Part shown: positions 21,301-60,656 of the stretch, piece after piece
How the letters are laid out: each line of letters begins with the position of its first letter
Position numbering within the stretch: position 1 is the first letter of the stretch
Assembly (NCBI GenBank): GCA_965113315.1
Contig: OZ220364.1
Strand: one strand, 5' to 3'
DNA: 64,000 nucleotides
From: Podarcis vaucheri
Taxonomy: Eukaryota
Translations under genes and position numbers: made by a program
Notes under the pieces: generated by a model
The model's database searches: none
Seen by the model: only the letters and a program-made list of their open reading frames with translations
Told to the model about the DNA's origin: nothing

Positions 21301-24300
21301 TGAATATTAAACCTACAGATTCACAGCATGAAGCTTAATTCTTGTTCCTGAATCACTTCTCAATGACATCACATTTCCTCATCTCAACTTTTGCATGTAA
21401 ACTAAAACATATAAGCTAGAATTTTTTAATTTATTATTATCACCTCCATTTTTTCATCATTATATTTTATTTGTAAAGCTTTGAAAATTACAAAATACTG
21501 TGTAATACATTTTTTAAAACAGAATTCTCTGCCTCTGGGCTAATTCTTTGCCTCATGTGTCATAAAAGTTTTTTTAATTGCATTGCTTGAAATAAAAAGT
21601 ATCTTTTTCAGTACCATACCAAACTGAACAAGAAACCTAAAATGTAATTTACTTGACATACAAAATTATATTTTGGCATGTGCTAGCATCCCCTAATGTA
21701 CTAATATTTTCATATTTTGCATTTTTTAATGCAACAACAACCACTCTTCACCCTAATGTTCCAGAGCAGGTTACAACATTAAAACAGTTTAAAGTAGCTT
21801 AAATTTAAAATAATATATGTAACAAACGTTATCATGCACTGGATTAATGTGTGAATGACATTCCTAGTTGCACACTAGGATCCTTTAGCGCTGCTTTGTC
21901 TTATTTTTTTATTTAAGAGTCTCCACCCGTACGTCAGAATCTGGTTGCCACCAAATCCCTGTAAGCTGGGATGGTGGTACAAGGTGGATGTTGGAACTGA
22001 AAGCACAAAGGTCAAAAAAGCAGGATGCTGAGGTCTGCTTTGAATCCAGTGCTATGACTATGGGAGAAGTCAGAAACTCTTGGAATGTAAAGCTGGAGAA
22101 CCTTTCCCAGTAGACTCCAGTTGCATATATGTGTAAATAAGCCATATATCATGAAGACACCAGAAGCTCTGTTGTGCCTCATTGTTCAGAAACATAGACT
22201 CTGGGTTAAAGCGAGCCTGCAACCCCTGGAATCTCGTGCTGTTCAGAGATTGGGGTGACATGTAACAATATGTTAATACAGTGGTACCTCGGGTTAAGTA
22301 CTTAATTCGTTCCGGAGGTCCGTTCTTAACCTGAAACTGTTCTTAACCTGAAGCACCACTTTGGTACCTCCTGCTGCTGCCGCGACGCCAGAGCACGATT
22401 TCTGTTCTCATCCTGAAGCAACGTTCTTAACCTGAAGCGTATGTAACCCAAGGTACCACTGTACTGACTCATCCTGACCTCCTATGACTCCAGAACTAAG
22501 GCAGCTAAACAACAAGCTAACATAGAAACAATCTCCATGGAGCTGGTTTCATTTAATTATTTTGCCAATTTACCACAATGGAATTACCACATCAGAATAC
22601 ATGCCATTTGTTTCATGCCACATTCAATGTTTTAAACCCATAATCTGAATCATATTGTTAACTTGTTCAGTGGAAGGGGAAACTACTGGGTGTACCAACA
22701 ACTTTTTTAAAAAACCAAATTTCCTTCCAATTTTAATAGCTGATTGGTTAAGGTAAAGCCAAATACCATATGTTCTGTATTTCCATTGCCTGAATATAGG
22801 ACACTCCTTACATTTGTTTTTAATATTAATTATAATAAGAAATAGGACATGGAAAATATTTTCAGCTTTATTCAGAAACATCTTGTGCAGAGCCCAAAGC
22901 TGGGGGGGGGGGATATTGAAAGGCAACTCCCCGCCCCAAAAAGGCAGGAATAAAATGAGCATTATACAATTGGCTAACATTTGCAACCACCTAAAGAAAA
23001 AAATAGCATAAAGTTGCAAAACAGTAGGCACCACGTTCATATATTTACTAGGACTTGTGGAAACAATCTTTGGCAAGGTTTTTTTCCTTTAGCAATGTAT
23101 ATGCAGTGGGCAATGTTGCCACATAAAAGCATTAAAGCAGCTCTGCTACATCAGACCCAGAGTTCATGTAGTCCTGCAGCCCAAAGCAAGCAAAATGCTT
23201 CAGGGAAACCCACTACTGGGTTATGAAGCCAAAAATCATTATTTAGGGTACATTACTACTATATTATGATTTGGATTTGATATAGAAGAAGAGTTTGGAT
23301 TTGATATCCCGCTTTATCACTACCCTACGGAGTCTCAAAGCGGCTAACAATCTCCTTTCCCTTCCTCCCCCACAACAAACACTCTGTGAGGTGAGTGAGG
23401 CTGAGAGACTCAGAGAAGTGTGACTGGCCCAAGGTCACCCAGCAGCTGCATGTGGAGGTTACACTGCAAAGTAAAGGGTGTGCCACTTCTAGGCACATAA
23501 TCTTTCCAAGGTATTTCCATAATCAAACAAGGTCACAAAAAGTAACAAAACAAGAACTCAACACAGACTAAAAGATTAAGTAACAGAAGAGGTTTTTTAT
23601 ATCAAAGGCATTTTTATTGGTTTCATATTTAGTCACTAGGGATAAAATCTTGACCATGTTTAAGCCAAAAAGAGATTCTTCCAGTGGAATTTTGCAGTAA
23701 TTTTAGCATCTGTCTATCAAATGGCAATATACTCCAGAAGAAACCTACAAACTGCCAGACCATTCTTAACTTTTAGGCATGAGAAACCAGCCATGCTTGT
23801 AAGGATGACATAATTCCCTGAGAACTGAATTGGTACCACTTCAGATATTACTGGTGGTAAAATTGTTCAGCTGTAATATTTTTAAATAAGGTTGAAACAG
23901 TATTTGACCCTATTTTTATTCAGCTGTGTGATCATGCTCAGCTGTAATGGGGGGAAGCCTTCCTAGATTATGTGCAAAATTAACCTACATACTGCTTTTA
24001 GACAATGTAGGTTTCATATTTCACTGAATTATACCTTACTTTCTCTTTTCCAAGCTATATTATCCAACCTTTAGTGTATTTCATCTAAATTCCAAGACAC
24101 TTCTACAATCACTCTCTTTTGGGAGGAAAAAAATCAAATATACAACTATACAAAGAATATACAAATGAATTCAAAACTCTTTTGAGAATCAGTACAGGAA
24201 ATAGCTCTAAGCTGCACACAAGTCACAAGGCAGTAATAAAATTCTGTTTCCCTAGTATGATCAAAATAGATTTTCTTGAAATAGAAAGCAATAATCTCTG

Positions 24301-27300: not shown

Positions 27301-30300
27301 CCCTTTGGTGATACTCAGGATCACATGAGGCAGATAAGGGAAGACAGGAAGAGCTGGCACAGCATCTTTTGTAGCCAAGAAAGGGGATGGGGGGAGTAGG
27401 ATAAAAGAACTCTAATTAAATAAAGTGATCCATTCATCATGTCTCCCGTTTCCATTACAAAACCCCATTTTTCAGGGCTTTATAACTCAGCCATAAAAAT
27501 GTGCTCTAGGCTGCAACTTGGCACACAAGGTCTCAGTTTGGGAGCACAGATTCATTCTTTCATTTGAAAAGAAAAGAAAAATGAGAAGCCTGTACTAGCT
27601 TCTTTTATTGTCTATTTCTGTATGCCACATTCTGACTAGAACAGGTGATGTTTACAATAAACAGTATACTACTAATAAGGACTGGCAATAACACAACACT
27701 GTTCAAACAATATGCATTTCCATCATTAGCATACAACATTCAAGCTATAGTTATAAACTCAGGAACCATATCTTTGTTTAAAAAAAGACAGAAAAAGAAG
27801 AGAGAACTTTTGAAACTAGAAGTATTATTTATTGGCATATGTAATGAGCGCCTATTTACTTATTTAATCCAGACTAATTAACTGCTAAATAAATACACTG
27901 GTACCTCGGGTTACTAATGCATCGGGTTACAAACACTTCGGGTTACAAACTCCACTAACCCGGAAGTAGTAACTCGGGTTGAGAACTTTGCCCCAGGATG
28001 AGAACGGAAATCGCATGCCGGCAGCAGCAGCGGGAGGCCCCATTAGCTAAAGTGTGCCTCAGGTTAAGAACAGTTTCGGGTTAAGAACGGACCTCCTGAA
28101 TGAATTAAGTTTGTAACCCGAGGTACCACTGTAAATAAGCACTAAGTAGTTTAAATATAATACAAGCAGGTCCTGCTTTCTGAACACAGTATGTTCCATG
28201 GAAACTGTTCACATAACGAGTCCATGGTTACCATTATTTCCTATGGATATATTTCTAATCTAGGATTTTTTGAATCTCTCTCCCTGCTTTTTCAATGGTT
28301 GCAGCCAATTAGCAAAAGAAAGACAAAATAAAAAACTGATTTGTCTCAACACTCCTACTCTCTGATTCATTCAGTCTAGTTCCCCCCTCCTTCTATTGTT
28401 TCTGCCCAGAAATGGTTGCTGACGGCCAGCAAAGCAAGGAAGTAAGAAAGCCATTTGTTTGGATAAGTGAATCTGCAGAGCATATAGCAAGATTTGGGCA
28501 TAATTGTTAATGTGAGGATAAGTGAATTTTTGGATAGCGAGCATGTGGATAGTAGGACCTAAGTATAGTATAAATTATTCCTTAAAGATAGCCATTAATC
28601 TAGACAATTTTTTGTTCCAGATGTAGTATTGTAATGTGCTTTTGAAAATGGCAATTGATGCAAAATGTAGTGGCCATGGAGGTAATGGGGCAGTGGATTG
28701 AATGCATTTACCGGTAATCCCCATTTTAAAAGTTAATCTGGTTGGCTTGGTGCTAAAAGTCCTGCTCCCATATATACCTGCCCATGCCTTGAGATGTACA
28801 GATGAGGCTTTCCTGGTGGTCCCAATACAGCCTGAAATACACAGCACAAGGCTTTGCGAAAGGACCTTTTCAGTTGTGGCCCCATGCCTGTGGAATTTCT
28901 TTGCCACTTAAATGTGTCTAGCTCCTTCAATAAATGTGTCTAGCTCCTGTGTCAATAATCAAATAAATAAATGATGTAGCTGGGAGAGCTACTGCGAAAA
29001 TTATGTCTGTTCTGACTGGCATCTCAAGCAAGAGGACTACACTGCATTAAACACAAACCACTCATTTCCTTCTGTGTGCCACACTAAGACTTCAGGGATT
29101 AGTCTTAAACTAGTTCTTCTGGTGAACTGAAAAGACTCAGGGACACATTTCATTTCATATGCAAGCATAAGCTACGGCAAAATTACTGCCAGAGAAAACA
29201 TAAAGATTAATCAAATCTGAATGTGTAGTCAGAGAGGTTGGAAACTTGATTAGAGCAGAGGTTAGGAATTAAGACAGGCATGGCCAAACTTGGTCCTCTA
29301 GCTGTTTTAGGACTACAGTTCTCATCACCCCAGACCACTGGTCCTGTTAGCTAGGGATGATGGAAGTTGTAGTCCCAAAACAGCTGGACGGCCAAGTTTG
29401 CCCATGCCTGAATTAAGAGATTGGAGGCCTGTACATATGCGATACAGTAGTACCTCAGGTTAAGAACTTAATTCATTCTGGAGGTCCGTTCTTAACCTGA
29501 AACTGTTCTTAACCTGAGGTACCACTTTAGCTAATGGGGCCTCCTGCTGCCACTGCACCGCTGCCATGCAATTTCTGTTCTCATCCTGAAGTAATGTTCT
29601 TAACCTGAGGTACTATTTCTGGGTAAGCGGAGTCTGTAACCTGAAGCGTATGTAACTTGAAGCGCCTGTAACCCGAGGTACACTGTATTAACAACTCAAA
29701 TTAAGGAAGAAATATTCTCTCCCCCATTCCTGGATGTGATTATATGTTCTACAAAGTTATAGCAGCTGGATCATGCGGTCCTATATTTTATTGAAGAGGG
29801 CTACCAATCACCATGTTGGTGGGGGTCTGACATTTTTGAAAGATGCAGGTAGTTTTTTTTTGTTATGGAAATTTATAACATAAATTATAGTGGCAAAAAT
29901 GAGTTGTGTGTACAAGGCTTTAGAGTGGGAGGTTTCAGGAAGCTGCTGACTACATAAGCCACAATAAGGACCAATTACTATGGCTGCATATTCCTTCCCA
30001 GAAAGGGTATTTCTGTTACCATAGTGTAATTGGCTGAAGATTCTTTACACATTTTCCCTACTGAATGGGAACCACACAATCTCTTTGTTTAAGTTGTAGT
30101 AGCCATGCACTTTTCAAACATATTCATTGGGCCAAACTCTAAACCCTTTAAGGTGCAGAGGAATGTTGTATTTTCACTAAGAAACATGCATCTCAGTCTA
30201 GCACAGAACAGCACAGAACTTAATGATAAACTTTTAAAATATTTTTATCTTAGTAGAATTTTTATTTTAACATACATTTTAAAATATTTTTATCTTAACA

Positions 30301-33300
30301 GAACTTGAGATGGCTGGCTATATTAAATGTACTATATTAGCATGCTCTATCAAGTGATTTAGTATTTGAATGAGATGAATGCTGGCCAGATGTACTGCAG
30401 TTTACAAATCAGCTGTTGTGTTCAAAACAGCAAATGTTTTAGAGCCCTTTGGCTAAAGAACTACACACACCTGCATATCAACTGGACAGACTCAATAGCC
30501 CATAAACACCAAACTCATCCATCAACTGCGGAACATTAACACTGCAAAATCTATCAGTTAAGTTAAAAAAAACTTAAGTGAACTTTGTATTATTGGAATA
30601 ATGCAAAGCACATTGGTGCACTTCAGCTGAACATGTACACTCAGCACAGCAGCTATATAGACTTCATCACAGTAGGCAAGTTCCAAATAAAATTAAATAT
30701 TTGTGAGTAACATATATCTCAATGGATTAGTTAAACACATGCTTAAACCTTTCCCATTCATATCAACAGTACATAAAAATGCTTTTCTGCAGTTTGATTT
30801 TATCTGATACTCTTAAGGCTTCAGCAATGATGAAAGGCTGGTATGAAGGTAGGTTTGTATTCATTCTTAGTAAAAACAGCATGGTACTAATATAGCACCT
30901 TCCTGATATCTGTGCCACATTTCTCACTGGGCAACTTTTGACACAGAAGTGTATAAGCGGATATTAGCTGGAAATCAGTATTTATTCTGATCTATTTATT
31001 AATGTTAATTAATTTTAGATATTATTGTCACCTGTATCTCAGAATGCAATGCTGGGATAAACCCCTACAGCCCTGAACACAAAAACACATTCTAAAAATG
31101 TAACTGTTAAAATATGTACCAGTGGGATAAGAACAATATCAGAAATATAGACCGTTGCTCCTGGAGGAAGCAAATAAAAACTGTGAAATGGGTACATCTA
31201 GCTTTGTTTGCTGTTCCTTAAACCAGGAATTTACATGAAGAAAAATACAACTTTAGAATAAACTGTTTACTGCTAAAAACCTGAATTTGATTTTGATTCA
31301 ATGTTTCATTTTATCCCATGCCCTTTGCTGACACTCTTGTGGCAGCATGTTATAACAGTAGATAGGAGTAGTGGGATCACCTGCTGTTTAGGCCCCTTAT
31401 GTTACCTACAAACAGCAGGATAAGGAAGGGTGTGAGGATGGAGTTTCAGTAATAACAGGGTGAATTTCCTGGCTTATGTCACCACCTTCCCATTACTCAA
31501 AAGATAATTTTCTTGTCTGTGACTACAGGAACTTGGGAGTTAAATCACTTGGCATTTCATATGGAGAAACACTTTGGCTTAAAATCCCCTCTACAAGAGC
31601 AAAGATTTGACAAGCTTGGCAGCTGAGCTTATATATTTATATGTTTCTCTGGGAGGTGAGAGGGGGAGTGAATAGAATATATAATCTCTTTCACAGGCCA
31701 CACAACAGAAAGTTCCAAGGGGGCCTTCTCTTTTGCACAGGAGAGATAATAGTCTCTCATCTTGACACACAAGGGTTTTAGGAAGGCAATTCTGCTTCTG
31801 CCAGCAGAATCTACACAGTGAATTGAAATAAAACAGAAAAAAATCAGTGCCAGTAAGTTCAGAATTTAGTGATGTCAAATTCCCCTCTAGGTGGCTTACA
31901 GCACATATAAAAAATTGTAAAACATCGGACATTAAACATTTCCCGATATAGGGCTGCCTTCAGATGTCTTCTAAACGTCAGATAGTTGTTTATTCCTTTG
32001 GCATCTGATAGGAGGGCGTTCCACAGGCTGGGCGCCACTACCGAGAAGGCCCTCTCCCTGGTTCCCTGTAAATTCACTTCTCGCAGTGAGGGAACCACCA
32101 GAAGGCCCTTCAAGCTCCAACCCACCTGTCCCCCTATTTCCAAACCCTTTCTCTTTAAATAGTTCTTGGGGGGAAACAGCTTGCCCAAAAGGGCAATGGC
32201 ATCCTTTTGTCTTGTACACTGCAGTGCAATGTGCTAGGCCCCATAACTTTTATCAAAAACTTTGACAAATGACTTTCACCAGCATCTCCAGTTCAAACAC
32301 TTTCCATAACAAGAACCTAACATAGTCTGTCATAACAAGGTAGCCCATTTTAAAGGAAAATATGTCACAGTAAAATCAAACTGAGGTGATGATCCAGCTG
32401 AAAGTTAAGTATTGTGATTCCAACTGTTTTGAATGGGACAGTTAAGTATGTGCTTAACACACCCATTCAAAACAATGGAACAAAATGCTTAGGTTTACTT
32501 GGTTCATGACTGTGGCGTTTGCCTCCTAGATGGGTCATAAGGAAAGGGTTAAAATGAGTGTGATGGCCAGTGAGAATGCAAGGGGGGAGTAAAAGTTAGA
32601 GTGGGAGGTTTTGAAAGTTAGTTGAGGTTTGGGAGTTGGAGAAGGAAGAGGGAAGAATAGGCAGTGGGTTGGTCGAGTTGCATTGCGTGGCGAGTTCCCG
32701 CCCCCCACCAAGATAAATAAACACACGAGACACCATAAATTAAGGTTAATTGGGCGAATTAGGCCACAACTTTATTGAATTCAGGAATGAGAGGCATTGG
32801 CTTAGGCATTGGTCCTAACGACTATCCGGCTCCAGCCCATTTGCTGGAGACACGGTGAAGGGTTAACACTGATCGGGGGAGTCTCCCGCTGAGGCACGTC
32901 GGCTAAGAGCTCCCCCGGGTCACCGCTCTGGGGCGTGCCTTTGGCCCACACCTCCATAGGCTTCGGACAGGGCCACGCCCCCCGGAGTCCTTTAACGGAC
33001 CACCCTTCGTTCACTGGGGGGAGGTGATGGCGTTCCTCCCCCCCACACATCCTCTTAACCCCTTCTTACCAATGCCTACCGCCAATGCCGAAGAGTTGTG
33101 ACGAGTTGCTACGAGGTAGGCGAAAAACCAAAAGGCTGGAAATTGCCAATTGGGAAAAATTCCTACCATGCCCCTTGCGGCGACAGGCCAAAGCCCATAG
33201 CAAAGTCAGACCTACCTAAAGCCCCAACTAAAGGGAGGGAGGGTGGGGAAACGTGGAGCTAGCCGGAGAAGAGAGGGCGAGCCCCCTCCGCTCCGGCCCT

Positions 33301-36300
33301 AAATAGGGCAAGCCACGCCCCCTCCAGCCAGCCGATTGGCTGGCCGGGAGGCGTGGCCGGATGGGATTCCCCTGCTCTCGCGGGGGCTGAGACCAGCCCC
33401 CGCTCACGTGGGGAAGGGCGTGATGCCCGCAACCCCACCTCCTGGGGCAGGCCCGGAAGTGGCTTTGCGTGGCGAGTTCCCGCCCCCCACCAAGATAAAT
33501 AAACACACGAGACACCATAAATTAAGGTTAATTGGGCGAATTAGGCCACAACTTTATTGAATTCAGGAATGAGAGGCATTGGCTTAGGCATTGGTCCTAA
33601 CGACTATCCGGCTCCAGCCCATTTGCTGGAGACACGGTGAAGGGTTAACACTGATCGGGGGAGTCTCCCGCTGAGGCACGTCGGCTAAGAGCTCCCCCGG
33701 GTCACCGCTCTGGGGCGTGCCTTTGGCCCACACCTCCATAGGCTTCGGACAGGGCCACGCCCCCCGGAGTCCTTTAACGGACCACCCTTCGTTCACTGGG
33801 GGGAGGTGATGGCGTTCCTCCCCCCCACACATCCTCTTAACCCCTTCTTACCAATGCCTACCGCCACCGAGCAGCCGCTCGCCGCCAATACTCTCAAGCC
33901 TGAATCCACTCCCTTATCCCCTTAGCAATATCCATCAGCCAAACATCGTTACCAGCATCCGAAAGATGCACGCCATCATACCGGTAGAGGGCCTCAATGT
34001 TGAAACGAATGCCTGGGTGGCTAATGACCAACCCCCCCAGGGCTGCCACTCTACGCACCACCGCCCGATCCAAGGCTTTCCTAGCCCTATTTATAGCTAT
34101 CGGGCACCTGCAATCTCTCCAAACCCGCCTCTCCATCAGCGAGGCCCAAATAATTGTGACATTCGGGTAAGCTGCCTTCAGCTCCTCGAAGTCGCTAAAA
34201 ATGTGCCACTGCAAATCAATTGCCTTCCTGTAGGCTAGGTCATTTTCCCCTAATTGTATAAGCAAAGCATCTGGGGGGCCCTCTACTGCCGCTCTGGTCA
34301 TAACTGCCGGAAGCATCTCGGCCCAGCGCATTCCCCTCCGGGAGACCCAGGAAATGGTGATGTGAGGTGGGAAGCCCAGGCATGGCCCGAGACCGGAATT
34401 AATGGCGCGGACCCTGGCCCAATGCACAATACTGTGCCCGATAATCCAGACGCGCGCCCCCATGTCACCTGTAGGAAATTGAGATAAAAGGCCATGGTCA
34501 ATCACTATCACAAATTCTTTCTCAAATAACGTTTGTACGCATTAGACTTCCAGCGACCTAAGTCCCTAATCCTTTCTGTTGTAAGACCCAAGTGCATTGC
34601 CGTGGTGGCTGCTCCGATCCTGAAGGAGTGTGCTGCAAAATCAGCCGCGGGGATGCCGCATGCTGCTATCGCTAAGCGCATGACCCGAGTGAACTGGTGA
34701 CGCGTCAAAGGTAAACCATCTGCATGGATCAATAGAGGCCCTGCCGAGGTGACCCTCAAGGATAAAAAGCGCCTCGTGTCTTTTACTGGGCATGGGCCAG
34801 GCCTGCCAGTAGGCATCAGCTGAACCAAAGCCCCCCTCCCGTACTGGTCCGTTTTGGAGCTGCGTATTCGTATTACCAAGTCCTCCCGTGACAAGGTAAC
34901 ATCGCTTAAAAGCAAGCCCCGGGAGGAACCGTGCCAACCTGCTTCATAAACTACCTCACCCACGCGCAGAGCTCCAAAAAAGGCAATGGAATATGCCGCT
35001 GAAAATAGGCGCGCCTCGTACTTTGACCAGCATACTGCACGCAATTTTTTATGGATTTGGGAGAGAATGTCGAATGATATCGGCCTTCTCGTATCGCAGT
35101 TTGGGGGCTGTAGCCTGCGCCAACCCTCTAACGTCCTTCGTATAACAAAATCGTCACAAGGATCTGTGGAAAATACCGCCTTGCAAAAGAATGAGATTGC
35201 CGCGGCTTGAAGGTTGAGGGTTCTGGGGGCGCGGCCCAAACGTCTTAGGTAAACTAGGTACGATAGCACCTCAGGCTTGACGGGAGGGGCATTGCTCTTG
35301 ATGGCTCGGGTTTTGCGGCGGAAGTTTAAAAAATCTGACCAAGCCTTCTTATAGGATCTCAAAGTGGAAGGTGCCAATGAGGCCATTACTCCCTGAATCA
35401 CTTCTGGCTCCCAGGCCTCTGGTCCCCATGCCTCTGGTCCCCGAGACTCCAAAGATGTTCCGGGAACGGCTGCGGCAGAAGCTCTGCATCCGGTGCCAAC
35501 GATCGGAAGCGGTCCATCTGAAAGCGAGATAGGGCGTCCGCGATGTCATTATTTACACCAGGCACAAATTTTGCAGAGAAGTGGATGTTGAGCTCTAAAC
35601 ACCGGAGAACGAAGGAACGCAGGAGGACGCCTACCCTTGGAGACCGCGCGACCTGCCTGGAAAGTACTGCCACCACGGCCTGATTGTCGGTGTGGAAGCA
35701 CACCCTATGGTTACTGAAGGTTTCCGGCCACAGGTGCACCGCCACTACTATCGGAAAAAACTCCAGGAAGGTTAAGTCTCTGGTAATGGGCCCCCCTTGC
35801 CAGTCGGCGGGCCAGCGCTGAGCACACCATTGGCCCCTAAAGTAAACACCAAACCCCAGAGAGCCCGAAGCATCTGAATGGACCTGGAAGTCAACCTGCA
35901 GCGACAGGTTGTCCTGCCACAGGGAAATGCCGTTGTAGTTCTGCAAGAACCTCAACCAGACTTCCAGGTCAGACTTCACTTCCTTGGATAGCCGTACTCT
36001 ATGGTGAGGGGAACGCAGCCCTGCTGACAATTTCGCGAGGCGGCCGCAGAATGGGCGGCCAGGGGAAACCACGCGGCAAGCAAAATTTAAGTGACCTAAC
36101 AGAGACTGGATTTGCCTGAGCGTAACTTTTCTTAGAGGGAGCAGCTGCCGAATCAGGTCGCCAAGCGCGATGAGTTTTTCCCTGGGAAGCTTTGAGGTCT
36201 GAGCGACCGTGTCCAGCTCGATACCCAAATAAACCATTGTCGTGGCCGGACCCTCAGTTTTGTCGGCGGCTAGAGGAACCCCCAGTTCCCCTGCCAATGA

Positions 36301-39300
36301 TATGAAGGCTTCGAGGAGCTCTGAGCACTTAAGGCTGCTATTGGCCACGAGGATAAAGTCGTCCAGGTAGTGCGACACGCCCTTGGCGCCGGTTCTAAAG
36401 CGAAGCGCCCAGTCTAGGAAGGTGCTGAATGCCTCAAAGGCTGCGCAGGCCACAGAGCAGCCCATGGGCATTGCCTTGTCTACAAAATATGCCCCCTCAA
36501 ATTTGAAGCCAAGCCACCGAAAATCTTCTGGATGAACTGGCAGGAGTCTAAAGGCCGACTCAATGTCACATTTTGCCAGCAGTGCCCCCTTGCCGAACTT
36601 GCGTATGAGCTGCACCGCTTGGTCAAACGTGGCATACCTAACTGTGCAGAGTTCCTGTGGTATCGCATCATTGACAGACCCCCCCTTAGGGTAGGAAAGG
36701 TTGTGGATCATGCGATACTCACCGGGCGCTTTTTTGGGGACTATGCCTAACGGGGAAATATGGAGGCCTTCGATTGGAGGGGCTAGGAAGGGGCCGGCTA
36801 CCCTTCCTGCTTTAATTTCCTTACTAATTTTCTTTTGGGCGACCTCGGGCATCTCCCTCACCGATTTTTGGTTTGGAGGATCACCTGAATTGGGGGGAAA
36901 GGCTACTGGGATCCTGAAACCAGTACTAAAGCCCTCCCATAAGTATTGCGCTGCCGTCCTGTTAGGATAAAGATCTAAAAGGTTTTTTAACGGTGTCAAC
37001 TTGATGGGGGACCAGGCTAAGCCCAGACTGAAATTACTGTCTGCCACCCTGGGGTCCGAATGGCGCTCCGTGGCCACCTCTCGGTCCCTGGTTATGGGCG
37101 CCTCTCCCACCCCGAAAGGGCTGCCTCCCTTTAATGCAGGCAGTGGCTGGGTGGTTACCTAGGCATTTTTCGCACTCGTGGCTGTACTTACAGACAGCCC
37201 GTGCACAAACCCCCTTGTTGTACTCCCAGCAGAGTCGCCTCTGCTTTGCAGCGGTTTTCCAAGGTCTCGACGACTCCTGGGGCTTCTTCTCCACGAAGGG
37301 ACCCACGTGGTCAGACCAGTAATTTTGGTCCCTCAGATCCCAGCGCGTGGACGACAACAGTGATGCATTTCTGCGGAAATCTTCATCATAATTTAGGGCA
37401 GCAATATCACCCGCTAAATCCCGTGCCCTCCTGACATGAGCTAGGTACGCAATCAAGTGCATCGCCCGCTTTGGATAAGCCGCGCTGACGACGCCCATGA
37501 ACACCTGGAACCCATCCAGCCAGTTGTCAAAAGTACGTTCGGGTCTAGGTGTCCTGTACCTACGATTACCATACTTGCGCTTCTTCTCCCCTTTACCTGT
37601 AAGCTTTGCTGGAGGTATCAGTCTGAAAACATCTATAAATTCTCCATTAAGGATCTTATTCCTCTTTCTTGGAGATAAATGAGAGCCTACGATGAAATCC
37701 GTAGACAGATTAGTGGACGTTTTAACATCCTGGACCAAAGCGCCATCCTTCCATTCGAGGGTCCCGTTAAAGGATTTCCTGTAGGAATTGGCCCTCCTCT
37801 CATTGACCCATAAAGGAAGACCCACAACGTCCTCCCCGTGGCCCCAATACTCCTCCCTAGGAGCATCACTATCTGAATCGGAAGAAGAAGAGGTACCTGA
37901 ATCATCCTCTGAATCCGAATGCCGACACTTCTTCTTCTTCTTTGAGGTGTGCTTCCTCTTCTCTTTCCTCTTCCCCGAGTGGCTCACAGGAATGGCTTGA
38001 TCCGGAACGGCTACCGGCTGCGCTGCTTGCGCCCCCTGGGCTTCCTCGTCGGAAGAAGAACTTGAGGCGCCCTCGGCTGATGCTGTCTGCAGTGGTGGGT
38101 TCTGAAAGAGACTTGGAACACCTGGATCCTTTTGCGGATTAGTAGCCCCAGGACAATGAACGCAAGTCTTACCCTTTCTGCCTCCCCTCGGGGCCCCTTT
38201 TGCCTTGGCCGGGCCGGTCGGCTGTGCCCGGGTATTCCTTTTGGGCCGGGGTGTTGACTCCTTGGCTGCCTTCAGCGCTGCCACCGCGGCTGCAGAAGTG
38301 CCGGGAAGTTGCACCTCGTTAGGTTGTGTGTCTGGGATGAAATCCTGAGTGAACGCTCTTGGTGCCTCCATCGCGGATACCGCCACCACCGGTGCCGCTG
38401 TCGATGGTGCCCCTGGAGCCAGCCCTGGTGCCGCTGTCACTTGCGCTGCCGGTGTCGCTGCCCCTTGTCCTGAGGATCTATGCCTATAGAAATCCTGAAA
38501 CGCTGTGAAAAAATCTGCCAAGGCTTGAGGGTTACTTGGGATTACAAAAGGTTGGGGCTCCTCCTGATTCCCCTGAGGCCCCCCAGCTGCGGTGGAGTTT
38601 ACTTGGTTACCTTGACCGGACATGATGTGATCTAGATTCTTGCTTATCTTGATCAATGAAACACCAACAACGTAGTATGGCTAATGTGCGTAGCTCAGTA
38701 TCGTCTGCACTGGCAAACTTTAATGGAATGATAGTTAACACACACAACTGCTCCTGTTCGATACTTTGCCCACCAGTAGAACAGCAGACAATCACCGTAG
38801 CTCAGTATTGTCCGCACTCAACCCAGTCGCCCAGAATTGTCCTCCCTGGATACCCACCAAAGAGCACTTTAGATATATGTATATGTATTATTACTATTCG
38901 TATCGCTGTAACTATATATTTATTTGCTTATCTATCGATTGCCGAATTGAATGATTGCAACTATATCACAATTAAAATTGTTAAGAGCAGGTAAAGCAAT
39001 GAAATGTAACGACCAATAGATGAGTTGGCCCAATGAACCAACTTCTAATTAACTTAAACGGAATAAAGCAACTTAATTAACGTGCAATTATAAAGGAGAG
39101 GAAATTAGTGAATGCGTGAGCTATCCCCAGCCTTCCCTTATATATTATAGAATGTCTACCGGCAGTCTATAGCCAAAGACAATAGAGTAATATCAGACTA
39201 ATTTCCTATGAACCAAATTATAATTTGTTTAACTGCAACAGAGAGGCAAGGTCACTTGAAAGATAATTGCAGACAAGGAGTTTTATCAAGCAAAGCAAGG

Positions 39301-42300
39301 CACCCTAGGAGCCCTCTACGCTCCTGCAAATAAACCAAATGAATTTAATTACCAGATAACTGTAGGCTAATATAATAAGCGGTCTATTTTACTTTGTATA
39401 AGGGGCACCTAAGATCTTAAGCTAAGCAGCCAATTGAAATGCTTTATCGGATAGTATACGTCCTATAACTAATTAGGAATAAGCCTTATAAACTCTTCAA
39501 GCACTCTGTAAATATTCCCCGCCACCCGGGGCAGCCCCTTCTTGTGCTGCCGGTATCGTGTGAGCCGTGCTGCTAGCTAGCTCTTTAACCCCCTTTTCCC
39601 AATGAATGAATAGGTATTGCTCTATACCTCCTATATTTACTTATGGAAGGAGTGAGGTAGACAGTCTAGCAACAGGCTTAGATCCCACCCGGTTTGCCTA
39701 GCCTAAGATGGCCGCCGCCGCCAGGCCACGTGGGCAAACAAAGATGGCGGCCGAAGGCTATCCGTTGCCTAGCAACGGAGGAAACCCCCAGGCAAAGTTG
39801 TGCTACAGACGAAGACTCCCGGACAAGACGGACGCAAGCGATAGACAATAGAAGCCCGTGCTAGACCAAGTCCCGCAAGAGAAACAAACCGCAATAGCAG
39901 GAAAGCGACCACACAGTGAGCAAAGAATCAACGCGCTCCAAGGATCAGTGCCTTAAACCTCCCGCCAAATTCAATTGCATAACAAGATACAACCTGATCC
40001 GAATCTCTGCAGAGCCACGTGGGTGGAGCGAAGGAGGAGGGTTGCCGGAGGGAGGTAGTCAGCTGGCTGGCGGGACGCGCGCTGCCTTGGAGGGCTGAGA
40101 GATCACTCCCCGAGCCGCCGGAGACCTACGAGCATAAGCCCCCCCCCCCAAGGAACAAAAACCAACCCCAAGCGATCTCAGCTCTTTCTGACCTCGCGGT
40201 GCAACGGAGCACGCCAAGTCGATAAGGAGAAAAGGACTCCCCGACAGTGATTTCAGCTCAAAAGTAAAGCAGCGGCAGTCACTGCAGCAAGGCTAATGGC
40301 TGCTGAAACAACGGTTCTCCGGTTGGTGAGCGAAGGAGCGCTGTACGCTAAACCGATACGGGGAAAAGAACTCTCCGCCAGTGATTTCAGCTCAAAATTA
40401 AAAGGAAAGCCGCGGTAGCCACTCCGCCCAAGCTAATTGCTGCTGAGATGGTTCTCCTGTGGTGGGCGAAGGAGCGCTCCGAAGCGCTTGTGCTGATGCA
40501 GTTCCACGCGGCAGCAAGAGGGCGAGTGGATTTCCGACGCGATCAGCTGGAGAAACGTGGAGAAACGTGGAGCTAGCCGGAGAAGAGAGGGCGAGCCCCC
40601 TCCGCTCCGGCCCTAAATAGGGCAAGCCACGCCCCCTCCAGCCAGCCGATTGGCTGGCCGGGAGGCGTGGCCGGATGGGATTCCCCTGCTCTCGCGGGGG
40701 CTGAGACCAGCCCCCGCTCACGTGGGGAAGGGCGTGATGCCCGCAACCCCACCTCCTGGGGCAGGCCCGGAAGTGGCTTTGTGAGAGAGTGAGAGGAATT
40801 GTTAGGTTGAGTCAGACAGATAGTTGGAATAATCAGTTTGGAGTTGTTAGGAACTAAGATTAAGAAACTGACAAGAGAAAAATTAACTGAAACTATACGC
40901 TTGTTCCTGCATTTAAAAATAAACTTGATTATTTGTTAATGTTAACAACTGTCTGGACTCCGTGTGTCCCTGTGAGAAACGGGGTGGTGGCAGCGAATAA
41001 AGCAATCACAGTGGTGGCACAGGGTCAATAGACCGTCAAACGTCCGGGGGCCCTGTGTGATCGCCACAATGACCTAACACAATTTTATCTTATGGGACGT
41101 TTTTGTATGATAGCCTTTTCTGTTTCACAATAATGACAGCTAAGTTGCATTATCCACTATCTTTGTTTTAACACAATTTGCTTTCAGTTACCTGAATCCA
41201 TTGTCTGTAAGATGGCAAGTGCCTCCATTCTGGCAGGGATTCTGAATACAGGCATTAATAGGAGTACTGCAGTCTCGACCCTAACAACAACAACAACAAC
41301 AAAAAGTCCATGTAAAATGGTTACTCCTATTTTATCTTTGATGCAGACGCTGATTCTCATCTCCCTTGCCTGCATTTTCTCATTGAGAGACACAAAGGAT
41401 GCAAACTTCAGAAACAGATCATCCAGTCCTATTCACTGAAAGCATTTTCCTTAAAGCAGGGTTTTGAGAAGAGAAGAAGAAATAGTCAAGTGGGAATCGA
41501 AAATATAGTTATTTTATCACCTAGAGATAGTTGCTTCTTATGTAGTAATGCACTTGTAAAATATCAAACATAAGCAATAAGAAATGAATATATATGAGAC
41601 ATAAAGCAAGATACATAATGTTTGTAACTTAAACAACATCTCAGCAAAGTCGCATTATGTACTATTGACTTTTATCTTTGTAGCAGAGTTAATTCGTTAA
41701 AGATACCAAGCAAGTTAGTGTTTATACCATGGGTAGGCAAACTAAGGCCCAGGGGCTGGATCCGGCCCAATCACCTTCTAAATCTGGCCTGTGGATGGTC
41801 CAGGAATCAGTGTGTTTTTACATGAGTAGAATGTGTGCTTTTATTTAAAATGCATCTCTGTGTTATTTGTGGGGCCTGCCTGGTGTTTTTACACGAGTAG
41901 AATGTGTGCTTTTATTTAAAATGCATCTCTGGGTTATTTGTGGGGGCATAAATACAGTACGGCCCCCCACAATACAGTACGGCCCACCACAAGGTCTGAG
42001 GGACAGTGGACTGGCCCCTGCTGAAAAAGTTTGCTGACCCCTGGTTTATACCTAAAAGCAAACTTTCAGTTGACAAACACCTCTGTCAAGCTGCTTTGCT
42101 TAGTGGTCACCTAACTATCCTTGTGGAATCAAAGCTTATTAAACTGTTGTCAGATTGGCATGTATGCCTATGTAATCAAATGTGTCATTTATGCCCACTA
42201 ATACACACAAAAGGACACCTGCAACAAGCTACACTAAATTAATGAATAAATAAATTTTAAAAGCAAGTCAAGGAGACTGCATTTTGCATACAACACCAGG

Positions 42301-45300
42301 TAAAGCTTAAATTTCTTTGCTCTTCAGATACTTTCAATGTTGTATCTTTAAAGCATAACTTCAAAAGAATATAAAAGGCTGATTATATCTTAGCTAGAAA
42401 TATTTTATCTGATTTCTACAGCATTAAGCAGTGTTAAACATTGCACCAAGAACAGGGAACTTTCCCCAGTTCAAGGGCCACCTTCTGGTGCCAACATCTC
42501 AGTGATAGGCACGGCCAGAGGCAAAATGAAGTGAGTAGTGAAGTAGTGAGTAGTAGTCTAGATTCTGCACGCACTAGCACACTTCTCATTCCAGCTAGAC
42601 AAAAACACTTAAGGTGGGGTAGAAAGCAGGGCTGGTGAGGTTGTGTGGCTTGGGAAGACACCCAAGAGTCAGATAGAGAGGCCTGGAAGGCACATCTCGG
42701 GTTAAGTCCTTAATTCGTTCCGGAGGTCCGTACTTAACCTGAAATTGTTCTTAACCTGAAGCACCACTTTAGCTAATGGGGCCTCCTCCTGCCGCTGCGC
42801 CGCCGGAGCATGATTTCTGTTCTCAACCGGTAACAAAGTTCTTAACTTGAGGTACTATTTCTGGGTTAGCGGAGTCTGTAACCTGAAGCATATGTAACCT
42901 GAAGCGTATGTAACCTGAGGTACCACTGTACATAAATATATAGATTTTGCTTCACTAATGCTTATTGGAATAAAACGATGGGAGGAAACTGACATCATAC
43001 TAAGGTGATTGTTCTATCAGGGCAAGCATTTCATCCAGTTTATGCTGCCACATTTTCACACATTTCATCACCAATCTACTGAGGACAAAAAGCAGCTTGG
43101 ATTTGATAAGATCTTTCTTGCTAAAGATAACATTCTGAAACCTTTGCTGGGCAAATGCAAGAATGTGACAGAGTGCATCAGGGAAACTGAGTTCATTGTT
43201 AAATGGCTGCATTGCTTATAAGAGCAGCAGTGCTTTGAATCTGATGTTTCGGGAATGTGCTTTGTATGCAATCTCAACCACCTAAAAAAAGGTGTGGAGC
43301 TAGAGTACATCTCACAAGGGAGACATGAGAGCTCTCACAGGACTTCTCTGTCTCAACCATAATTGGGAGTAGTTCCCCTTGAACTAGGAATTTCTCACTT
43401 GCAAACAAATTCAGTTACAGATATAAAGAAAGCATAAAGTCATTGATTGGCATCTTGACTCACACAAAGATGAAGTATAATTTGTAATAATAAATAATAC
43501 CTGGGGATCTTACAAGAGCCACTTGTTGCCCAGTGGCTGCATTGCTAACCTTGGAAGGAAGAAGTGGTACAATCAGCATTCTACACCACTACTTGACATG
43601 ACTAACATAATTCAAATGCATCTGACTTCCTGTTTGAACACAACTATATCCATTTTACTTTAAATTTCTCTCAATACTACAGCATAAATGGCTTTTATTA
43701 GTTTCCAAAACATATCAATATTTTGGTAAATATGAAAATGGCCTCATAGAGGAATTGTTGGACCCCCTTTCATAAACAACCCTCTTATACCATCTGAAAA
43801 GCCACTCCTGAAAACCAGATTAAGTTCAAGAGTGGCCTCTGACACAAGGAGCTGAAACTGAAGAAAAGTAAATAGGGAAAAACTTAGTGAATGTACAGAA
43901 CAACATGGACATGCCCAAGGGGCTCTTTGGATCCCCACCCCCGGAGATGTGTTTGAATGGAGGACCATGTCTGTGTGGCACTTTAGATGCACAAAGTGTT
44001 TTAGAGTACATGGAGAAGGGTATCAAACTTCAGAAGAGATTAAGCACACATCTTGCATACGTAAATGTCCTAGGGTCAATTTCCTACCATCTCTAAATCT
44101 CAAGCGGCAGGGCTGGGAAAAACCCTGCCTGAGATCTTGGAGGGCCACTTGCCAGCCGGAGTAAACAATACTGAGCTAGATGGACCAATTGTCTGTTCCA
44201 GTATAAAGCAGCTTCATATGTTTACAATCTTTGCAAGTCCTCAGCACAGCCAAGGGCTTTGGGACTTCAACACATCCAACCCCTATGAAGTCTAAGCAGA
44301 GTTTTACTCTGGTTTCCCACTCATTTACACAGTAGAAAGAGTTAAAAAGTGGTATTACACCAACTTATGATCCATTGCTTACAGAAGTTCATTCGATTAA
44401 TATTGATATACTTTTTGGGAGTGCTTCTTTTATGTCTGGTGAGGCACTACAGTGCTCATCAAGGAATATAAATGTCCATGCAGATAGCCTCTAAGCCGGC
44501 CTTCCACCAATCCAGTGACATCCAGATGTTTTGAACTCCAACTCCTATCAGCTCCAGCCAGCATGGCCAATGGTGAGGGATGATCAGAGTTAAAGTTCAA
44601 AGCTTCTGGATGGCACCAGACTGGGGAAAGCTACTCTAATTTAGCTACAATTGGTCCCCAAGTTCCATGTCTAAGACTTTATCCAGTGAATTCTACTCAA
44701 TTAATTCAACACTCCAGCTTCATTTGTGACTACTTTCATCTGCAGCAACACATGCAGCTGAAGACTTGCTACATCTTCTGTGCTCCAGATAAGGAAATAT
44801 TTTTTGAGTTGCCTGACTGAATAATCAATTAAACTCTTTCAACCATTCTTGGATTAGGGGTCCTGCCATCTAACTGATGTAGCAACGCACTCCTCCACAC
44901 AAGATTTTCTTCACATCGACATCAAACAAGGAATAACAAATGCTGAAAGGGCAGACTCAATACAATTTATCAAGGTAAAGGAAATAGCTTCCAGATGGAC
45001 AGACGTGTTTGGTGCTGGTTGGTGAGAAGGAAGCAAGGTATTGTTACTGAATTAGCATCACACTCTAGAAGAACAGCTTGGTACAAAAAGAATTATCTTT
45101 TCATATGGTTCACATTTGAATTTGTCAAATGTCACTCCTGTAAAAAATATATGTGGCAACAATGTAGAGGTTTTCTTGAGGGTTGTAGAAGGGCTTCTAC
45201 TCTCTTTCTCCCATGTCTCTGGTACTAGTTGCTCTTTTACTCCATACTATCTGAATACGGCCCATACAGATGCAACAGTATTTTTAGATTAGTATGTACA

Positions 45301-60430: not shown

Positions 60431-60656
60431 CAGTGGTACCTCGGGTTAAGTACTTAATTCGTTCCGGAGGTCCGTTCTTAACCTGAAACTGTTCTTAACC
60501 TGAAGCACCACTTTAGCTAATGGGGCCTCCCACTGCCGCGGCAGCACCGGAGCACGATTTCTGTTCTCATCCTGAAGCAAAGTTCTTAACCCGAGGTAAT
60601 ATTTCTGTGTTAGCGGAGTCTGTACCCTGAAGCGTATATAACCCGAGGTACCACTG
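60431..60656 (+). mobile_element. Tc1/mariner-type MITE, same family
   Basis: TIRs CAGTGGTACCTCGGGTTA / TAACCCGAGGTACCACTG, TA flanks. Confidence 0.88.

Follow-up and report, generated by a model that had tools for sequence, protein, structure and literature searches.

A recently inserted, apparently undamaged Ngaro-like retrotransposon, very probably autonomous, with a predicted SGNH esterase gene in a lacertid-lizard genome

The 64,000-nucleotide stretch of DNA analysed here (the window) very probably carries an autonomous tyrosine-recombinase retrotransposon of the Ngaro-like type (order DIRS) that belongs to a lacertid-lizard family and is recently inserted and apparently undamaged. The element occupies 8,099 bp (32683-40781), as delimited by its repeat structure and an empty-site contig, and reads on the minus strand from 40781 to 32683, as do all features described below; the initial annotation had not stated this orientation. 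Its framework is a set of split direct repeats in the order A1...B1A2...B2, in which the 220-nt copies A1 (40562-40781) and A2 (33248-33467) are identical, as are the 402-nt copies B1 (33465-33866, with AATAAA at 33553-33558) and B2 (32683-33084, with AATAAA at 32771-32776), with 0 differences in either pair. B1 abuts A2, the two overlapping by the trinucleotide CAA (33465-33467), an arrangement that models the circle junction; B2 ends in CAA (32683-32685), and a unique spacer of 163 nt (33085-33247) separates A2 from B2. In a contig from a related organism the target is uninterrupted, with left flank, TTG and right flank joined (27/30 matches, 7/7 beyond the core), and this match fixes the element boundaries; because the contig differs at three of the 30 positions, it may stem from a paralogue of the repeat in the flank instead of from the orthologous locus. 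Interspersed repeat sequence of very high abundance directly borders the element, which differs from its flanks in GC content (54% versus 38-39%) and CpG observed/expected ratio (0.71 versus 0.19-0.21). Coordinates, repeat identity (judged by eye) and CpG richness against a CpG-poor, presumed intronic host sequence had all been put forward in the initial annotation; the coordinates proved exact, and the other two observations were reproduced by counting.

Esterase domains of the type encoded by the last gene of the element are also found in large, host-like 'ZNF318-like' gecko proteins, as might be expected if no transposon had inserted here and the region were a segmental duplication or a cluster of genes domesticated by the host. 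Such an origin is scarcely credible, being contradicted by the contig with an uninterrupted target, by the multi-copy state of the family in reads of several organisms, by a complete split-repeat architecture with identical pairs, and by a base composition foreign to the flanks.

The leader, ~1.9 kb without an ORF (38624-40561), holds two diverged units of ~134 nt that are 77% identical (40211-40342 and 40345-40478), as well as an AT-rich part (38880-39650) where CpGs are retained (observed/expected 0.67); an Rfam search of the leader gave no match. Repeat A1 is the presumed promoter, with a CCAAT box (40649-40653), a GC box (40627-40635) and a TATA-like TATTTA (40614-40619), and the AATAAA in B2, ~90 nt before the end of the element, is the presumed poly(A) signal. 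Both the promoter-like and the poly(A) motifs stand where they would be expected. Two results weigh against the proposed reading: the B repeat folds only marginally better than shuffled versions of itself (z = -1.8), and no inverted-repeat arms were found around the CAA core. The interval 31500-42000 contains no inverted repeats of at least 40 nt.

Four ORFs free of internal stops are encoded, with no hydrophobic segment in any of them. The gag-like ORF1 (37034-38623; 529 aa from the first ATG) comprises a disordered N-terminal part rich in Ser and Lys, then a conserved core and, close to the C-terminus, a CCCH finger with a CCHC knuckle after it; it matches no Pfam family above threshold and its AF2 model is poor, and its core is 48-65% identical to Podarcis gag parts over 275 aa (55-73% over a 195-aa core). 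ORF2 (37110-35398, frame open from 37158; RVT_1, E=2.4e-13) encodes RT and RNase H, the catalytic YLDD and D-E-D-D residues being invariant among 21 relatives (D182, Y248-L-D-D251, D413, E450, D525) or nearly so (D475), with a C-terminal motif that aligns to Ty3 RNase H. The 314-aa tyrosine recombinase of ORF3 (34508-35452, frame open from 35545) belongs to a family whose profile matches Cre (E=3e-11), and its complete catalytic set R-K-H-R-W-Y (R163, K200, H275, R278, W301, Y309) is invariant. ORF4 (33894-34463, frame open from 34541; 189 aa from the ATG) matches Lipase_GDSL_2 (E=9.5e-5), conserves the S-G-N-D-H residues S11, G44, N74, D163 and H166, and yields an AF2 model of pLDDT 93.6 whose top Foldseek matches are SGNH folds. 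The intact ORFs and complete catalytic motifs noticed at first reading are thereby substantiated, the motifs falling in invariant alignment columns save for the nearly invariant RT D475.

Assignment to Ngaro, as originally proposed, is made from anatomy and domains, namely split direct repeats, RT/RNase H and a tyrosine recombinase with neither a methyltransferase nor inverted terminal repeats, the RT tree having been built without the Repbase references DrNgaro1 and DIRS-53_XT. An SGNH hydrolase ORF after the recombinase, the feature of the hydrolase-bearing Ngaro subgroup, is present, and the SGNH-bearing YR elements of Xenopus are Ngaro-like ones (PMC9210276). Placement in another tyrosine-recombinase group, DIRS1-like or PAT-like, is highly improbable: PAT-like elements also have split direct repeats (PMC6681497), as seen here, but Pfam detects no methyltransferase domain in any ORF and RT and RNase H fill the whole 570-aa ORF2, leaving no room for one, while the DIRS1-like hallmarks of inverted terminal repeats, internal complementary region and methyltransferase are all missing. 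The position of the SGNH ORF as in the Xenopus Ngaro-like families (PMC9210276) and the nearest non-squamate RT relatives, which are amphibian (45-50% identity), likewise speak for Ngaro. An LTR retrotransposon or endogenous retrovirus was rejected on the grounds that the ends are different repeats (A and B), that a tyrosine recombinase takes the place of an integrase, and that there are no Pfam matches to rve or RVP.

Among proteins, the closest matches come from lacertids (Podarcis muralis 91-95%, Zootoca 75%), in keeping with the lizard-like host initially surmised. Podarcis muralis LOC144326307 (P0139), derived from an internally deleted copy, is 95% identical in the RT part and 91% in the recombinase, and Zootoca vivipara LOC118082278 (P0001, P0145, P0262) includes gagN-recombinase and gagN-esterase isoforms modelled with a common donor; both loci, undescribed and annotated through automatic gene models under the names 'uncharacterized protein' or 'xerD homolog', belong to the same family as the element or to sister families. 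Beyond squamates, the architecture is not new, as the first reading had allowed: the Xenopus Ngaro-like families (PMC9210276) also have four overlapping ORFs (gag-like, RT/RNase H, tyrosine recombinase and SGNH hydrolase), A (236 bp) and B (152 bp) pairs that are 100% identical, as the pairs are here, and signs of recent amplification with potentially active copies, which applies to the lizard element too. They differ from it in host, frog and not lizard, and in RT sequence (~50% divergence; Xenopus RT proteins are 48-50% identical to ORF2), and the lizard element has a much longer B (402 nt), an A2-B2 spacer and a 1.9 kb leader. Zebrafish DrNgaro1 and the original Ngaro group of Goodwin and Poulter (2004), compared through the descriptions in PMC9210276 and PMC6681497, share the defining A1-B1A2B2 layout, RT/RNase H and tyrosine recombinase and, as far as these accounts of them extend, the absence of a methyltransferase. 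Rather than founding a new type, the lizard element is a well-preserved addition to one previously described from frogs and fish. As far as the searchable literature goes, such elements are indeed poorly characterised in squamates, as first suggested; esterase-bearing relatives are, however, already annotated in all major squamate lineages.

With no differences across the 622 nt of paired repeats, the age of the insertion has a 95% upper bound of about 1.2-3 My at an assumed 0.8-2e-9 per site per year, and the identity of the repeats could partly stem from assembly polishing. Near-identical contigs (~99-100%) are present in reads of two or more organisms (A and B), and the best-supported differences from other copies are synonymous at 10/10 sites in RT, 6/8 in the recombinase and 4/4 in the gag core; mostly synonymous differences, together with ~99% identical contigs in at least two organisms, indicate that the family was recently active. 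Identical repeats, retained CpGs, the empty-site contig and near-identical copies in reads all support the very young insertion first suggested, and the element is potentially mobile or polymorphic today, as judged from its sequence. It may instead be a structurally intact copy that is immobile, either recently dead or host-silenced, in a family whose amplification is over, with repeat identity owed in part to polishing or gene conversion; this is a real, if lesser, possibility. The element differs at several sites from the most abundant variant in X1 (4.7% over 37897-38449), and its high CpG content invites methylation silencing, yet all four ORFs and every catalytic residue are intact, none of the 622 repeat positions differs and CpGs are retained, and the mostly synonymous differences are the pattern of a replicating lineage, not of decay.

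Expression of the four genes can be modelled from sequence motifs and gene predictions (NCBI isoform models from one Zootoca locus and from Podarcis). Gag would be translated from full-length RNA. ORF2 lies in the +1 frame relative to ORF1 with an open overlap of 122 nt, and RT/RNase H would probably be reached by frameshifting within it, a candidate +1 shift motif being CCCTTTCGG (37112-37120). Recombinase and esterase would probably be made from spliced RNAs, each fused to the first 242 gag codons: a candidate donor CAG|GT (37892-37906, exon end 37897) follows 242 gag codons plus 1 nt, at a position whose homologue in Podarcis P0260 and the Zootoca LOC118082278 isoforms is the '...EDDS|' junction. 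Two candidate acceptors stand in donor-compatible phase, TTTCAG|AT before the recombinase (35511-35525, exon start 35517), predicting a 578-aa gagN-recombinase, and CCTACAG|GT before the esterase (34460-34477, exon start 34468), predicting a 433-aa gagN-esterase. DGPLP follows the recombinase junction both here and in Zootoca P0145, and homologous gagN-esterase fusions are modelled in P0260 (428 aa) and P0262 (397 aa). No spliced joints appeared among the matches listed from presumed RNA runs of another organism.

One CAA (TTG on the other strand) is present in the uninterrupted target, and CAA also marks the B1/A2 junction and each end of the element, a pattern in agreement with the trinucleotide rule at the junction and ends of DIRS elements (PMC7192593). 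Combining this anatomy with the published Ngaro/DIRS model, RNA polymerase II would start in A1, downstream of the CCAAT, GC and TATA-like boxes, and transcription would end at the AATAAA in B2; with a start inside A1 and a stop inside B2, the RNA would lack the start of A and the end of B. The internal B1-A2 copy would supply the missing ends during reverse transcription, giving a DNA circle with a B-A joint equal to the internal B1/A2 junction. The Cre-like recombinase would then exchange strands between the CAA of the joint and that of the target, and integration would leave CAA at both ends with no other duplication, which is the anatomy observed. Dictyostelium DIRS-1 (PMC7192593) similarly uses a tyrosine recombinase, restores its termini from an internal copy of the joined ends, and has a species-specific trinucleotide at the circle junction and, after integration, at both ends, comparable with CAA here; it differs in having inverted terminal repeats, an internal complementary region and a methyltransferase but no esterase, the reverse of the lizard element.

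The product of ORF4 is predicted to be a cytosolic SGNH serine esterase lacking a membrane segment. By sequence profile its closest solved relative is the zebrafish ZfL2-1 LINE ORF1p esterase (PDB 4c1b, E=3e-8; PMC3905857), which is likewise retroelement-encoded and shares the SGNH fold, the Ser-Asp-His triad and the Gly/Asn oxyanion residues at ~21% identity, and which has been shown to be active and to bind acidic phospholipids (PMC3905857). By analogy with this L2 LINE ORF1p esterase, the ORF4 product most likely binds lipids or membranes, or acts on them, while particles are assembled or transported. The gene context is different: in L2 the esterase makes up the C-terminal domain of ORF1p, with a coiled coil before it and pol downstream, whereas ORF4 stands alone as the last ORF, after the recombinase, and has GHS in place of GDS in block I. 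Membership of the CR1/L2-type LINE ORF1p esterases was rejected on this context, the fold and catalytic residues being alike and the kinship real. The env-like 3' position of ORF4 and its probable expression from a spliced subgenomic RNA would also suit an env-like or receptor-destroying surface protein resembling viral haemagglutinin-esterases, in an element spreading virus-like from cell to cell. This is very unlikely, since neither ORF4 nor gag-N has a signal-peptide-like or transmembrane hydrophobic segment (maximum Kyte-Doolittle 19-residue mean 1.1-1.3), the nearest solved relative is a cytoplasmic LINE esterase and not a viral one, and squamates and amphibians fall largely apart in the RT tree, as vertical descent predicts.

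A wider proposal, advanced tentatively and on balance doubtful, is that a lineage mobile today in an amniote inserts at CAA in an abundant host repeat, produces its recombinase and esterase as spliced gag-N fusions, and shares its esterase, by descent or exchange, with L2/CR1 LINE ORF1 and a host 'ZNF318-like' multi-esterase family; if true, the shared esterase would suggest that unrelated classes of retroelement have a lipid or membrane step in common. To our knowledge, Ngaro replication has never been studied by experiment. A complete young lizard copy supplies exact termini, an empty site and an intact four-gene set, which together define the action of the recombinase at its CAA core, and the purpose of the SGNH esterase, a long-standing question, becomes directly approachable, kinship with the L2 LINE esterase providing a concrete lipid- or membrane-binding hypothesis. 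DIRS-order elements are absent from birds and mammals (PMC4350176). For annotation, many squamate protein entries named 'uncharacterized protein', 'xerD homolog' or 'ZNF318/638-like' represent either proteins of Ngaro elements or chimeric models.

The minus-strand retrotransposon, of Ngaro type (tyrosine recombinase, order DIRS), extends over 8,099 bp from 40781 to 32683 (5′ to 3′) and comprises, in that order, repeat A1 (40781–40562), a leader of ~1.9 kb, four open reading frames (ORFs), B1 (33866–33465), A2 (33467–33248), a 163-nt spacer and B2 (33084–32683), with the trinucleotide CAA forming the overlap between B1 and A2. Repeat finding and pairwise alignments gave 220 nt for each A copy and 402 nt for each B copy, with 0 differences within either pair as the initial annotation had claimed, and its repeat lengths and both end coordinates proved exact. 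All four frames, likewise on the minus strand, are free of internal stops, again in keeping with that annotation: ORF1 (38623–37034; 529 aa counted from the first ATG; gag-like), ORF2 (37110–35398; 570 aa; frame open from 37158, +1 relative to ORF1; reverse transcriptase (RT) and RNase H), ORF3 (35452–34508; 314 aa; tyrosine recombinase) and ORF4 (34463–33894; 189 aa counted from ATG; SGNH esterase). The CpG richness it had noted is reflected in a GC content of 54% and a CpG observed/expected ratio (o/e) of 0.71, against 38–39% and 0.19–0.21 in the flanks (~12 kb per side); the AT-rich part of the leader has retained its CpGs (o/e 0.67) and is thus part of the young element, not old host DNA. 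Just 3′ of A1, the leader carries two tandem units of ~134 nt each (40211–40342 and 40345–40478; 77% identity). No further copy of any element part was found within the window, no Rfam match at E ≤ 0.1 within 32000–41500, and no tRNA by ARAGORN in the whole window; the RNA fold of the B repeat gave a marginal z of −1.77.

The termini are delimited by an uninterrupted version of the target. The 5′ end reads ...CTCTCTCA-CAA-AGCC..., the B1/A2 joint ...CCACG-CAA-AGCC... and the 3′ end ...CCACG-CAA-TGCAACTC.... A contig from X15, a read run of organism D guessed to be RNA, tracks the left flank to 32661 and continues for 30 further letters, of which 27 match ‘left flank + TTG + right flank’ (7/7 beyond TTG), compared with 22/30 for the occupied allele (2/7 beyond TTG). 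This contig is an uninterrupted target version; given its three mismatches it may represent a paralogous copy of the flank repeat rather than the orthologous locus, and, paralogue or orthologue, it demonstrates that the element is an insertion, that its limits are 32683 and 40781, and that a single CAA in the target is found at both element ends after insertion. Trinucleotide behaviour of this sort has been proposed for DIRS elements (PMC7192593). A TTG/CAA core is supported; a symmetric, ‘loxP-like’ site is not, as inverted repeats of at least 6 nt are absent around the B1/A2 junction and CAA core. The DNA that received the insertion (32450–32682, and rightwards from 40782) is itself an interspersed repeat of very high abundance, with a word depth of ~57,000 in X1 (organism A, possibly the assembly's own sample) versus ~800 for the element's coding part; primers at 32600 and 40850 lie in this repeat DNA and would not be locus-specific. 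Position 32654 is G in all 23 contigs and A in the window, and none of the contigs listed bridges 32682/32683.

Every testable defining feature of Ngaro-like elements was found, and the DIRS1-like, PAT-like and LTR element definitions do not fit. Xenopus elements with a four-ORF layout, an SGNH hydrolase and 100% identical split repeats have been published, together with potentially active copies and amplification dated to the last 3.2 My (PMC9210276), in agreement with the initial view that the architecture is not new; the kind is thus already known, and what is new is this copy, very well preserved and in a little-described host group. The present analysis contributes exact termini, for which an empty site and a CAA core give support, a relationship between this esterase and that of an L2 LINE, evidence that copies have been under purifying selection, and the caution that the flanks are repeat DNA.

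The catalytic motifs of the encoded enzymes are complete. ORF2 matches Pfam RVT_1 (E=2.4e-13). When it is aligned with 20 relatives (lizards, snakes, amphisbaenians and frogs), no substitution is seen at RT positions D182 and Y248-L-D-D251 or at RNase H positions D413, E450 and D525, and D475 is nearly invariant; the C-terminal motif is alignable to Ty3 RNase H. As a single sequence, ORF3 gave marginal Pfam matches (Phage_int_SAM_4, E=0.0015; Phage_integrase, E=0.11) and nothing relevant in the PDB; a profile built from 23 family members was the sole route that reached Cre recombinase (E=3e-11). By this profile, ORF3 H275-x-x-R278, W301 and Y309 align to Cre H289, R292, W315 and Y324, and R163 and K200 are likewise invariant in the family. 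ORF4 matches Pfam Lipase_GDSL_2 and conserves all SGNH blocks across 16 sequences (GHS with S11; G44; G-E-N74-D; D163-G-V-H166); its AF2 model (pLDDT 93.6) has only SGNH/GDSL esterases as best Foldseek matches, and a sequence profile places it closest, among solved proteins, to the ORF1 protein esterase domain of the zebrafish LINE ZfL2-1 (4c1b, E=3e-8), the runner-up being weaker by about four orders of magnitude. ORF1 matches no Pfam family; its conserved core of ~195 aa shares 55–73% identity with Podarcis gag parts (48–65% over a 275-aa stretch), a CCCH finger is followed by a CCHC knuckle, and the AF2 model of the gag core (pLDDT 51) is too poor for use. No membrane-spanning hydrophobic segment was found in any of the four ORFs.

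Repeat A contains, on the minus strand, a CCAAT box (40649–40653), a GC box (40627–40635) and TATTTA (40614–40619), ~50–90 nt before its end, and AATAAA lies ~90 nt before the end of B (32771–32776 in B2, 33553–33558 in B1, minus strand). Under the published replication model of Ngaro and DIRS elements (PMC6681497, PMC7192593, PMC9210276), the transcript would lack the beginning of A and the final part of B, both would be restored from the internal B1-A2 copy in reverse transcription, and a circle with a B-A joint would be integrated at CAA by the recombinase. The open overlap of ORF1 and ORF2 (122 nt) contains CCC-TTT-CGG at 37112–37120, and the only variant listed in it is synonymous in the ORF2 frame and non-synonymous in the ORF1 frame, which weakly favours a possible frameshift from ORF1 into ORF2. 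NCBI models of Zootoca LOC118082278 join one gag N-terminal exon (‘...EDDS’) to the recombinase (‘DGPLP...’) or the esterase, and the Podarcis library protein P0260 has this exon joined likewise. Homologous to that junction is a candidate minus-strand donor, CAG/GT at 37897/37896, with candidate acceptors TTTCAG/AT at 35518/35517, followed by DGPLP, before the recombinase, and CCTACAG/GT at 34469/34468 before the esterase, both on the same strand. The donor and both acceptors are phase-compatible, and spliced gagN-recombinase and gagN-esterase fusions are predicted, of 578 aa and 433 aa by length count. Among the runs guessed to be RNA (X15–X20, from another organism), X15 alone was examined, and no spliced joint was present among its matches listed. 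ZfL2-1 ORF1p has esterase activity and binds both acidic phospholipids and liposomes (PMC3905857); by analogy, the favoured reading is that the ORF4 esterase may act in a lipid or membrane step while particles are assembled or transported. Capture of GDSL ORFs is also documented for rotifer LTR elements and Penelope-like elements (PMC5408684).

The repeat pairs together show 0 differences in 622 nt. At assumed substitution rates of 0.8–2e-9 per site per year, the 95% upper bound on age would be about 1.2–3 My, and tighter in truth because CpG-rich sequence mutates faster. Contigs of the element's family are present in 4/4 runs, namely X1, X5 (organism A, another sample), X3 (organism B) and X15. 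X1 pieces differ from this copy across ORF2–ORF4 by 0–1 letters per 190–310 nt, and X3 pieces by 14 letters in ~1,980 nt (~0.7%). Over the gag N-terminal part at 37897–38449 the only X1 contig listed differs by 26/553 letters, so this copy is not the most abundant variant there; outside that interval X1 divergence is ≤0.5%. The same contig stops precisely at 37897, the base immediately preceding the candidate splice donor; coincidence, an assembly-graph break at an SNP or a mosaic boundary could each account for this.

Differences between copies were sampled (40 of 452), and the 34 best-supported ones lying in a single ORF were classified, 23 of them as synonymous. Synonymous and non-synonymous counts among these are 10 and 0 in RT/RNase H, 6 and 2 in the recombinase, 4 and 0 in the gag core, 2 and 7 in the gag N-terminal part, and 1 and 2 in the esterase; this mostly synonymous pattern bears the mark of lineages replicating under selection, not of post-insertion decay. 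X1 word depth is ~700–1,900 over ORF1–ORF3 and ~3,000–4,900 over ORF4, and very uneven (3,800 to 540,000) over the repeats, spacer and left flank, depths not being equivalent to copy numbers. The 3′ parts and repeat region are thus more abundant than the coding part, compatible with truncated, deleted or non-autonomous relatives, and some short stretches are common to far more abundant repeats. One X1 contig joins 33368 (A2) straight to 35446 (the ORF2/ORF3 border), skipping 2,077 nt, and is an internally deleted relative without recombinase and esterase; taken with the rise in depth towards the 3′ end, this joint suggests that many copies are defective or non-autonomous.

The best RT matches are from Zootoca vivipara and Podarcis muralis (75–80%), and P0139, a Podarcis muralis model (LOC144326307) of a deleted copy, matches the RT part at 95% and the entire recombinase at 91% identity, so Podarcis has this family or one that is its very close sister. 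On these matches the host is most likely a lacertid, which sharpens the earlier description of a lizard-like genome. RT identity is 54–60% in other squamates and 45–50% in frogs, and in the RT tree lacertids form one clade (100/100) and squamates a group (84/84) comprising two or more old lineages, with the amphibians in a clade of their own (100/99), a shape that would agree with long vertical persistence. A search of the protein library with the esterase returned 1,438 cluster representatives, among which proteins with the N-terminal leader and esterase were named from Podarcis, Zootoca, Lacerta, Sceloporus, Hemicordylus, Paroedura, Eublepharis, Elgaria and Rhineura, and also from frogs. The statement that such elements are poorly characterised in squamates therefore stands for the literature, in which our search found no published description of esterase-bearing Ngaro-type elements in lizards, but not for squamate annotations, where relatives are widespread.

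In a 422-aa protein of the pearl oyster Pinctada imbricata (P0236), a tyrosine recombinase with 44% identity to ORF3 is accompanied by an SGNH esterase domain, so the recombinase-esterase pairing reaches well beyond vertebrates. Two gecko proteins, P0259 (Sphaerodactylus townsendi, 3112 aa) and P0261 (Paroedura picta, 2677 aa), are collinear (39% over 2,363 aa), each with a matrin/U1-type zinc finger, an Arg/Ser-rich part and 4–6 SGNH domains that share 31–32% identity with the Ngaro esterase (E 6e-80 to 5e-130); a C-terminal esterase is also present in models named ‘ZNF318-like’ and ‘ZNF638-like’ from Eublepharis, Elgaria and Zootoca. These look like a host gene family sharing the esterase domain, or partly chimeric gene models, and a Pfam search of the gecko and ‘ZNF-like’ proteins added little.

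No host exon was identified in the window, which leaves the host intron of the initial annotation putative. Elsewhere in the window, two adjacent minus-strand ORF fragments of LINE reverse transcriptase at 14792–15578 (RVT_1, E=3e-10) are the remnant of an old non-LTR retrotransposon. An interspersed repeat of ~235 nt occurs in five copies of 80–89% identity (42696–42930, 29454–29687, 60440–60646, 27894–28122 and 22288–22435); it is probably a SINE, and ARAGORN detected no tRNA-like part in it. The right flank contains, at 41812–41945, a direct repeat of a 63-nt unit (period 71 nt, 97% identity).
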